A stretch of 64,000 bases of DNA from Podarcis erhardii (taxonomy: Eukaryota): assembly GCA_964252035.1 (NCBI GenBank), contig OZ176206.1. One strand, written 5' to 3'. Made by a program: the position numbers and the translations under genes. This document shows positions 33,901 through 34,138 of the stretch, one piece after another; position 1 is the first letter of the stretch, and every line of letters starts with the position of its first letter. The notes beneath the pieces are model-generated. The model was not told the origin of the DNA. It ran no database searches and saw only the letters and a list, made by a program, of their open reading frames with translations.

Positions 33901-34138
33901 ACCACCAGTGACTGTTTCAAAAGAAAAGGAAGTGCAAGCCCTGAGCAATTCTTCTCCCCCCTTGCTTGCCTTCCCTGTGCAGCTGTGTCACTTTCTAAAG
34001 TCTCAGTTTTTGGAGGAACAAGTGGAGGCCATCAAGCAGTTGGCAGACCATCTATCTAACTTGAGGCGCTTGGGCGTGCCCCAGGATGGCTTGGGAGAGC
34101 ACCTCTTTGACAAGCTCACCCTGGGGGCGTGCAGCTGA
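30957..34138 (+). CDS. Ferritin subunit paralog (M/H'-like, catalytically atypical), 176 aa; exons 30957-31058, 32234-32380, 33195-33320, 33983-34138
   Basis: [34 protein letters not shown] | [49 protein letters not shown] | [42 protein letters not shown] | [51 protein letters not shown]; exon sizes 102/147/126/156 nt, all phase 0 with GT/AG, matching vertebrate ferritin gene structure. Confidence 0.93.
31235..31516. mobile_element. Non-autonomous DNA-transposon-like repeat, copy 2 (ferritin intron 1)
   Basis: Similar to 29655-29920; begins with CAG...TGG and ends in CCACTG. Confidence 0.65.
32514..33090 (-). mobile_element. 5'-truncated L1 (ORF2 C-terminus plus 3' tail) in ferritin intron 2
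   Basis: Minus frame [20 protein letters not shown]...LLALLG...IAKFW; flanked by the perfect 21-bp direct repeat GATGTCTATCTATATGCTTGT (32493-32513, 33091-33111). Confidence 0.8.

Follow-up and report, generated by a model that had tools for sequence, protein, structure and literature searches.

Ferritin subunits assemble into cages of 24 that have three-fold pores. Mammalian light chains (FTL) have lost the ferroxidase centre and kept D131 and E134, carry an acidic nucleation cluster (E57, E60, E61, E64, and E67), and are presumed to work inside heteropolymers. FTHL17 is an intronless retrogene. It is X-linked, expressed in germ cells, and H-like in sequence; it has no ferroxidase activity owing to E62K, and a regulatory function, as opposed to storage, has been suggested for it (PMC7760355). 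As for the three-fold pore, it was reported that D131 and E134, strictly conserved in H chains, bind hexa-aqua Fe2+ and are both required for its rapid transit, and that D131N alone abolished the rapid uptake of Fe2+ in human H ferritin (PMC13088775). The D131N variants of human H ferritin and FtMt were engineered, and that of tarsier mitochondrial ferritin is natural; this single natural replacement in the mitochondrial ferritin of one primate prompted a structural and kinetic study in 2026 (PMC13088775). A cyanobacterial ferritin that has only one carboxylate there, at the 131 position, moves Fe2+ quickly, according to a citation in the same paper (cited in PMC13088775). Our literature search returned no description of the squamate ferritin clade presented below and nothing relevant on D131H/E134H mutants or lizard ferritin paralogs.

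The window analysed here, i.e., the whole stretch of 64,000 nucleotides (64 kb) of Podarcis erhardii (contig OZ176206.1, assembly GCA_964252035.1), is free of N runs and contains one ferritin gene (Table 1). In the gene model, four coding exons of 102, 147, 126, and 156 nt, all joined across GT-AG introns of phase 0, encode a product of 176 aa; the acceptor of exon 4 is ...cctgtgcag, with coding sequence from 33983. Vertebrate cytosolic ferritin genes have the same exon lengths, and the layout was repeated in 10 related loci. Exons 2-4 matched Pfam PF00210. In phmmer comparisons with solved structures, exon 4 aligned without gaps and its first residues, LCHFLKSQ, stood opposite LCDFIETH of human H ferritin (residues 130-137 of the 183-aa chains in that alignment) and LCDFLETE of bullfrog ferritin 1bg7, the closest solved chain; L chains were matched at E ~5e-14. 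Residues are given below in human mature ferritin numbering, which equals the window residue index + 3. The exon model, its translation, and the phmmer alignment agreed with a preliminary description of this DNA, in which exon 4 was said to open with LCHFLKSQ, His and Lys to replace D131 and E134, and H118 and C130 to be retained.

Table 1. Features of the 64-kb window, with the exons, pore codons, and alternative splice sites of the ferritin gene
Feature	Position	Strand	Remarks
BTB/zinc-finger gene, ZBTB8B-like	6229-8824	+	
BTB + C2H2 zinc-finger gene, ZBTB8A-like, upstream of ferritin	21803..27001	+	Pfam BTB 9.7e-29; tblastx match to the gene upstream of the ferritin ortholog in Sceloporus
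Ferritin gene	30957-34138	+	
Ferritin exon 1, coding part	30957..31058	+	Residues 1-34; E27 and Y34 present; GT donor next; RNA-like contigs cover 30903-31058
Ferritin exon 2	32234..32380	+	147 nt, residues 35-83; Q58E, H60L, E61K, E62K, E64G, H65Y; PF00210 1.2e-5
Ferritin exon 3	33195..33320	+	126 nt, residues 84-125; E107 present; H118 codon CAC at 33288-33290
Alternative GT donor, exon 3 extended by 14 nt	33321..33334	+	Frameshift; truncated product without pore helices; joints 33333/4 to 33982/3 and ~33863 in runs X1 and X2
Upstream alternative acceptor or retained end of intron 3	33861..33982	+	Annotated 141-aa isoforms, stop ~33909; contig X1-6 unbroken over 33863-34011; tails of P0126 and P0128 in the same frame
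Ferritin exon 4	33983..34138	+	Residues 126-176 + TGA; helices D and E; N-terminal LCHFLKSQ
C130 codon TGT	33986..33988	+	Outer-pore cysteine retained; C in 13/13 scored clade members and 72/75 canonical paralogs
H131 codon CAC, replacing D131 (GAC)	33989..33991	+	Lacertids and, separately, one cordylid
K134 codon AAG, replacing E134 (GAG)	33998..34000	+	In every species of the squamate clade but Elgaria (CAG, Q)
Polyadenylation signal AATAAA	34195..34200	+	Stop + 57 nt; contigs end at ~34223-34232
Archease (ZBTB8OS-like) exons, downstream of ferritin	36352..41431	-	tblastx match to Archease in Sceloporus
RBBP4-like exons	from 45379	+	
Intermediate-filament gene	61270-62289	-	

Among 75 aligned canonical vertebrate paralogs, D131 and E134 were each present in 74, and the replacement by H131 and K134 is therefore beyond ordinary variation. 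As to the H-type di-iron ligands (E27, E62, H65, E107, and Q141, with Y34 and E61 in addition), the window ferritin has E27, Y34, E107, and Q141, and is altered at three positions (E61K, E62K, and H65Y). In place of the twin carboxylates D131 and E134 of H-, M-, and L-type animal ferritins it has H131/K134, and at the acidic cavity cluster of L chains it reads E57, L60, K61, G64, and E67, with L60 and K61 fixed throughout the squamate clade. Judged by its predicted fold and its gene structure the window protein is a true ferritin, one whose residues are neither those of the H type, nor those of the L type, nor those of the pore common to all three types.

Like mammalian FTL, the lizard ferritin appears to be a non-catalytic chain with the usual fold and gene structure, in which Lys stands at position 62 and H65 has disappeared (E62K and H65Y as observed here). 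Unlike FTL, which retains D131/E134 and the acidic cluster, it carries H131/K134 and has L/K/G at positions 60/61/64; moreover, it lies at a different locus, between ZBTB8A and ZBTB8OS, and is of separate origin. The putative loss of catalysis via E62K is shared with FTHL17, from which the lizard gene differs in having the ancestral four exons, in the synteny of its autosomal locus across squamates, and in the additional E61K, H65Y, and E134K. With the D131N ferritins it has in common the loss of one of the twin carboxylates, and the same D131N is carried by its orthologs in the geckos Paroedura and Euleptes; however, in those ferritins E134 is preserved and the ferroxidase centre is active, whereas the lizard ferritin has H131 and K134 and its catalytic centre is gone. 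Similarly, the canonical H- and M-type ferritins of reptiles and amphibians ('heavy chain A/B' and frog M/H) agree with the lizard ferritin in length, exon structure, and fold, with 62-75% identity to the P. raffonei ortholog P0130, but differ at residues 61, 62, 65, 131, 134, and 168.

Relatives were retrieved by a word search with exon 4 (the query being the stop-free stretch 33830-34135, region 52-102), then with the Podarcis ortholog, and then with a clade profile. The window ferritin fell into a squamate-only clade, with SH-aLRT 99 in the first tree and UFBoot/SH-aLRT 100/99 in the second. Including the window, this clade comprises 16 species: six Lacertidae (the other five being Podarcis muralis, P. 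lilfordi, P. raffonei, Zootoca, and Lacerta agilis), one Cordylidae (Hemicordylus), two Scincidae (Tiliqua and Lerista), one Anguidae (Elgaria), three Iguania (Sceloporus, Phrynosoma, and Anolis sagrei), and three Gekkota (Paroedura, Euleptes, and Heteronotia). The window sequence differs from those of the other lacertids by 4-7 residues, the nearest being P. raffonei. In the tree, the clade arises separately inside the 'heavy chain A/B-like' group of reptiles and amphibians and shows no orthology to FTL, and its branches are longer than those of the canonical paralogs. The gene is publicly annotated as 'ferritin heavy chain A-like'; by our own dating, the clade ferritin is about 200 million years old. 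The profile search of annotated proteins, which covers annotation only, yielded no new members of the clade, and none from snakes, agamids, teiids, amphisbaenians, or tuatara. Its function could therefore be dispensable in some lineages, such as snakes, agamids, teiids, and amphisbaenians, unless the genes there are simply unannotated.

Only four fixed changes, Q58E, E61K, E134K, and Y168H, set the clade apart from the 75 canonical paralogs, followed closely by H60L and E62K. Expressed as residue states, E61, E62, H65, D131, E134, and Y168 of the canonical paralogs correspond to K61, K62, Y/D/N/Q65, D/N/H131, K134, and H168 of the clade. The order of a ZBTB8A-like BTB/zinc-finger gene, the ferritin, and Archease on the minus strand was found in the window and at eight other squamate loci (9/16 species), and the RBBP4-like gene beyond Archease in the window and at three of those eight; the common order identifies these ferritins as positional orthologs. 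Gene order around the gharial sister gene (L010) and the Elgaria gene (L001), where the flanks have Ns or missing gene calls, lies outside this comparison. We refer to the clade genes as the ZBTB8A-adjacent ferritin orthologous group, a definition of this analysis, and the window ferritin belongs to it both by position and by K61, K134, E58, and H168.

Y168H lies in helix E (window residue 165; GEHLFDK vs GEYLFDK) and was seen in all scored clade members and in 0/75 canonical paralogs, as was Q58E. Codon 136, immediately after K134-S135 in exon 4, is lost in the iguanian orthologs of Sceloporus (L004) and Anolis sagrei (L006), and one codon of exon 3 is lost in the B-C loop of Hemicordylus (L002; KPDQ-EW).

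Eleven loci, ten from squamates and one from a gharial, all had intact ORFs and the same set of four exons with phase-0 introns. Pairwise dN/dS by the Nei-Gojobori method was 0.10-0.25; in the maximum-likelihood codon model omega was 0.195, and omega = 1 was rejected (2dlnL = 290). The ferritin gene is clearly under purifying selection. An AF2 monomer of the P. raffonei ortholog, 98% identical, had a pLDDT of 91.8 and superposed on human H and frog M ferritin with TM 0.94-0.97 and an rmsd of 1.3 A; its predicted helices (11-38, 46-72, 93-120, 124-154, and 161-175) follow the A-E pattern of ferritins, a four-helix bundle with a short fifth helix. As modelled, the window ferritin folds as a normal subunit, with H131 and K134 positioned in the first turns of helix D.

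Transcription and splicing of the gene are indicated by contigs from two runs of a close relative (X1 and X2, which are RNA by guess only). These had a depth of 100-220 over exons and 3-12 over introns, and three exact GT-AG junctions in the two runs (31058|exon 2, 32380|33195, and 33320|33983) coincided with the predicted splice sites. At the first of these junctions the contigs contain two extra letters, giving Ser35 as in the other lacertids. The alternative, frameshifting splice forms (Table 1) made up a minority of the contigs, at about one-third to one-half of the depth of the canonical junction in X1 and X2; the 141-aa isoforms are without helices D and E and hence without the entire three-fold pore. 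At intron 1, the donor in the orthologs of Elgaria (L001, 10102/10103) and Hemicordylus (L002) is GC-AG instead of GT-AG. A search for iron-responsive elements, which IRP-regulated ferritin mRNAs carry in the 5' UTR, gave no Rfam match (E <= 10) in 28500-34500, a result that is uncalibrated because the control, a canonical Podarcis paralog (L011), was equally negative. Similarly, the 1.5 kb next to the ATG lacked the hairpin motif C-N5-CAGWGN in 8/10 orthologous loci, and the two others had only chance-like matches far upstream (-677 and -1201); closer than about 0.65 kb to the ATG, the motif was absent from the window and from all 10 loci. L011 was again negative, and both the sensitivity and the placement of the UTR are uncalibrated.

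Residues 131 and 134 have distinct evolutionary histories. K134 occurs in 15/16 clade proteins and is encoded by AAG in 9/10 squamate coding sequences; the exception is Elgaria with CAG (Q), and codon 134 of the gharial sister gene is GAG (E). Codon 131 is CAC (H) in the lacertids and Hemicordylus, GAC (D) in Tiliqua, Elgaria, Sceloporus, Anolis, and Heteronotia, and AAC (N) in Paroedura; at the protein level alone, D was also seen in Lerista and Phrynosoma and N in Euleptes. H131 is thus present in all six lacertid sequences and one cordylid, and D or N in the other 9/16 species. The preliminary description had proposed to check whether both replacements are fixed across orthologs: this held for K134 in all species but Elgaria and not for H131, since most orthologs have D or N at position 131. 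On the accepted species tree, the pattern corresponds to a single early E134K, followed at position 131 by two or more D-to-H changes and by a change from D to N that took place once or twice. The gene tree, in which lizard family relationships are unresolved, did not reject a clade of lacertids and the cordylid (AU p = 0.48), and the independence of the D131H origins therefore rests on the accepted species tree and on single-copy synteny.

E134K has also arisen independently elsewhere. It was found in the turtle paralogs P0096, P0097, and P0105, together with E61K and with E62 and H65 kept, and in the catshark paralog P0077 with all ferroxidase ligands intact; K134 alone is therefore no proof of an iron-inert subunit. 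At position 131, the python paralog P0107 has A and the Gekko paralog P0110 has N.

The reading that we prefer, with a probability of roughly 0.55, is that the window ferritin is the lacertid member of an old, squamate-specific group of maintained, non-catalytic subunits whose Fe(II) path is reversed in charge. Three Glu-to-Lys reversals would lie along one Fe(II) path, i.e., at the pore constriction (134), at the transit/inner surface (61), and at the di-iron centre (62), accompanied by H65Y/D/N/Q. The loss of the channel had been described at first as independent of the loss of the ferroxidase centre; that view was not upheld, as E134K and E61K/E62K occur in the same clade and would reverse the charge along the same path. 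Whole-protein charge and pI were not notably different from those of the canonical paralogs, so the change of charge is local and the cage is not supercharged.

At the constriction, a ring of three Lys at position 134 would be expected to repel Fe2+, and a pore containing this subunit would therefore no longer be a quick iron conductor; by analogy with published mutants of other ferritins, we infer that the pore of the window ferritin excludes cations. Where D131 is kept, K134 probably pairs with it and the pore would be roughly neutral. After E134K, D131 may have lost most of its constraint, giving way to His in the lacertids, separately to His in the cordylid, and to Asn in some geckos. D131H would remove the partner of K134, and the lacertid pore could therefore be the most cationic of all. 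Since the cyanobacterial ferritin with its single carboxylate moves Fe2+ fast, the orthologs that retain D131 might still conduct some iron. Moreover, the side chains of the Lys residues could be turned outwards, off the axis. The subunit probably either joins catalytic ferritin paralogs as a channel-blocking partner, a co-assembly that we purely infer and that would lower the iron flux via shared pores, or builds iron-poor cages with another role.

A possible but distinctly less probable explanation is passive relaxation, in which the pore residues would have drifted after the ferroxidase centre was lost, H131 and K134 would be functionless, and the gene would be kept for a cage-only role. 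The two positions speak differently on this. By a rough Poisson estimate, about 9.4 nonsynonymous changes are expected on the tree per neutral codon and 1.8 per average codon. Position 131 changed at least three times among 13 clade members (four times with the cordylid included), which is close to the rate of an average protein site (P(>=3 changes) = 0.28) and agrees with relaxation; judging from the aligned sequences, this position has passed from near-invariance to ordinary variability, limited to D, N, and H. The Q134 of Elgaria points in the same direction. At position 134, however, only one change was observed (p ~0.0008 vs neutrality on the same rough estimate), with K134 spread over all major lizard and gecko lineages. 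One change against about 9.4 expected, in a state that is fixed and among only four diagnostic substitutions, argues that K134 is a constrained, diagnostic residue. E134K, E61K, and E62K fall on one path and appear directional, and mammalian L chains, which are without a ferroxidase centre, still have D131/E134. The combination of random variation at these sites with dN/dS near 1 was seen neither for the gene (0.10-0.25) nor for K134 (15/16 species), and the earlier view of an otherwise intact gene, repurposed and not decaying, was borne out for the gene as a whole and for K134 by omega, by the intact ORFs in the 11 loci, and by the spliced contigs of high depth.

Beyond the preferred reading of a charge-reversed, non-catalytic subunit, it is rather doubtful that the protein forms a natural 'iron-blind' cage or blocks the channel as a regulatory subunit, its physiological role being neither iron oxidation nor storage; the Lys134 ring would then have turned a cation funnel into a closed or anion-preferring gate, and the His131 ring of lacertids and cordylids could hold Zn or Cu. 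Less likely still is the soft-metal site proposed in the preliminary description, in which the His/Cys of the lacertid pore (H118, C130, and H131) or a tri-His on the three-fold axis would serve to bind Zn(II) or Cu and not to conduct iron. In its favour, H118 and C130 are conserved, H131 is present in 6/6 lacertid sequences and has, by the species phylogeny, a second origin in Hemicordylus, and every replacement of D131 is polar and one base change away (N or H), which might suit a metal ligand. However, the adjacent ring of K134 should repel cations, and the two independent origins of H131 were left unconfirmed by the gene tree in the AU test mentioned above. Moreover, H131 is missing in 9/16 species, so that such a site cannot be the conserved function of the clade and would at most be one of lacertids and cordylids. 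That the gene is a decaying or non-functional copy, or an assembly or annotation artefact, is scarcely credible: the longer branches of the clade, the sizeable share of transcripts with frameshifting splice sites, and the failure to find an IRE (also in the control paralog) would fit it, but it is contradicted by the intact ORFs and conserved splice sites of the 11 loci, the omega of 0.195, the same residues in independent assemblies of six lacertids and in the spliced, RNA-like contigs of the relative, and the confidently predicted fold.

As the gene is already publicly annotated under a generic name, no new kind of molecule is described here, and the mechanism is put forward as a proposal; what is new is that residues 131 and 134 differ in their evolutionary histories. 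The clade presents a selected and expressed natural ferritin with Lys at the constriction and two more Glu-to-Lys changes on the same path, in which position 131 was then replaced repeatedly. It could thus serve as a natural evolutionary experiment on the fate of a ferritin pore when iron conduction is unwanted, and it is a candidate for a reptile class of non-catalytic subunits with an origin independent of the mammalian L chain.

Several local features were also observed around the gene. Dispersed-repeat copies are located at 33474-33590 (intron 3), at 31368-31484 (intron 1), and at ~28370-28510, and they coincide with depth spikes in all four runs and with many loose ends. Weak matches to a mir-5408-like hairpin were found at these copies, and L011 has such matches too. 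Upstream of the ferritin, at ~28370-28510, there is a SINE-like pair in near-perfect inverted arrangement. Finally, a very GC-rich island at 18001-20000 (GC 0.717), where both strands carry long spurious ORFs, lies just 5' of the BTB exon of the ZBTB8A-like gene and is probably the CpG-island promoter or the first exon of that gene.
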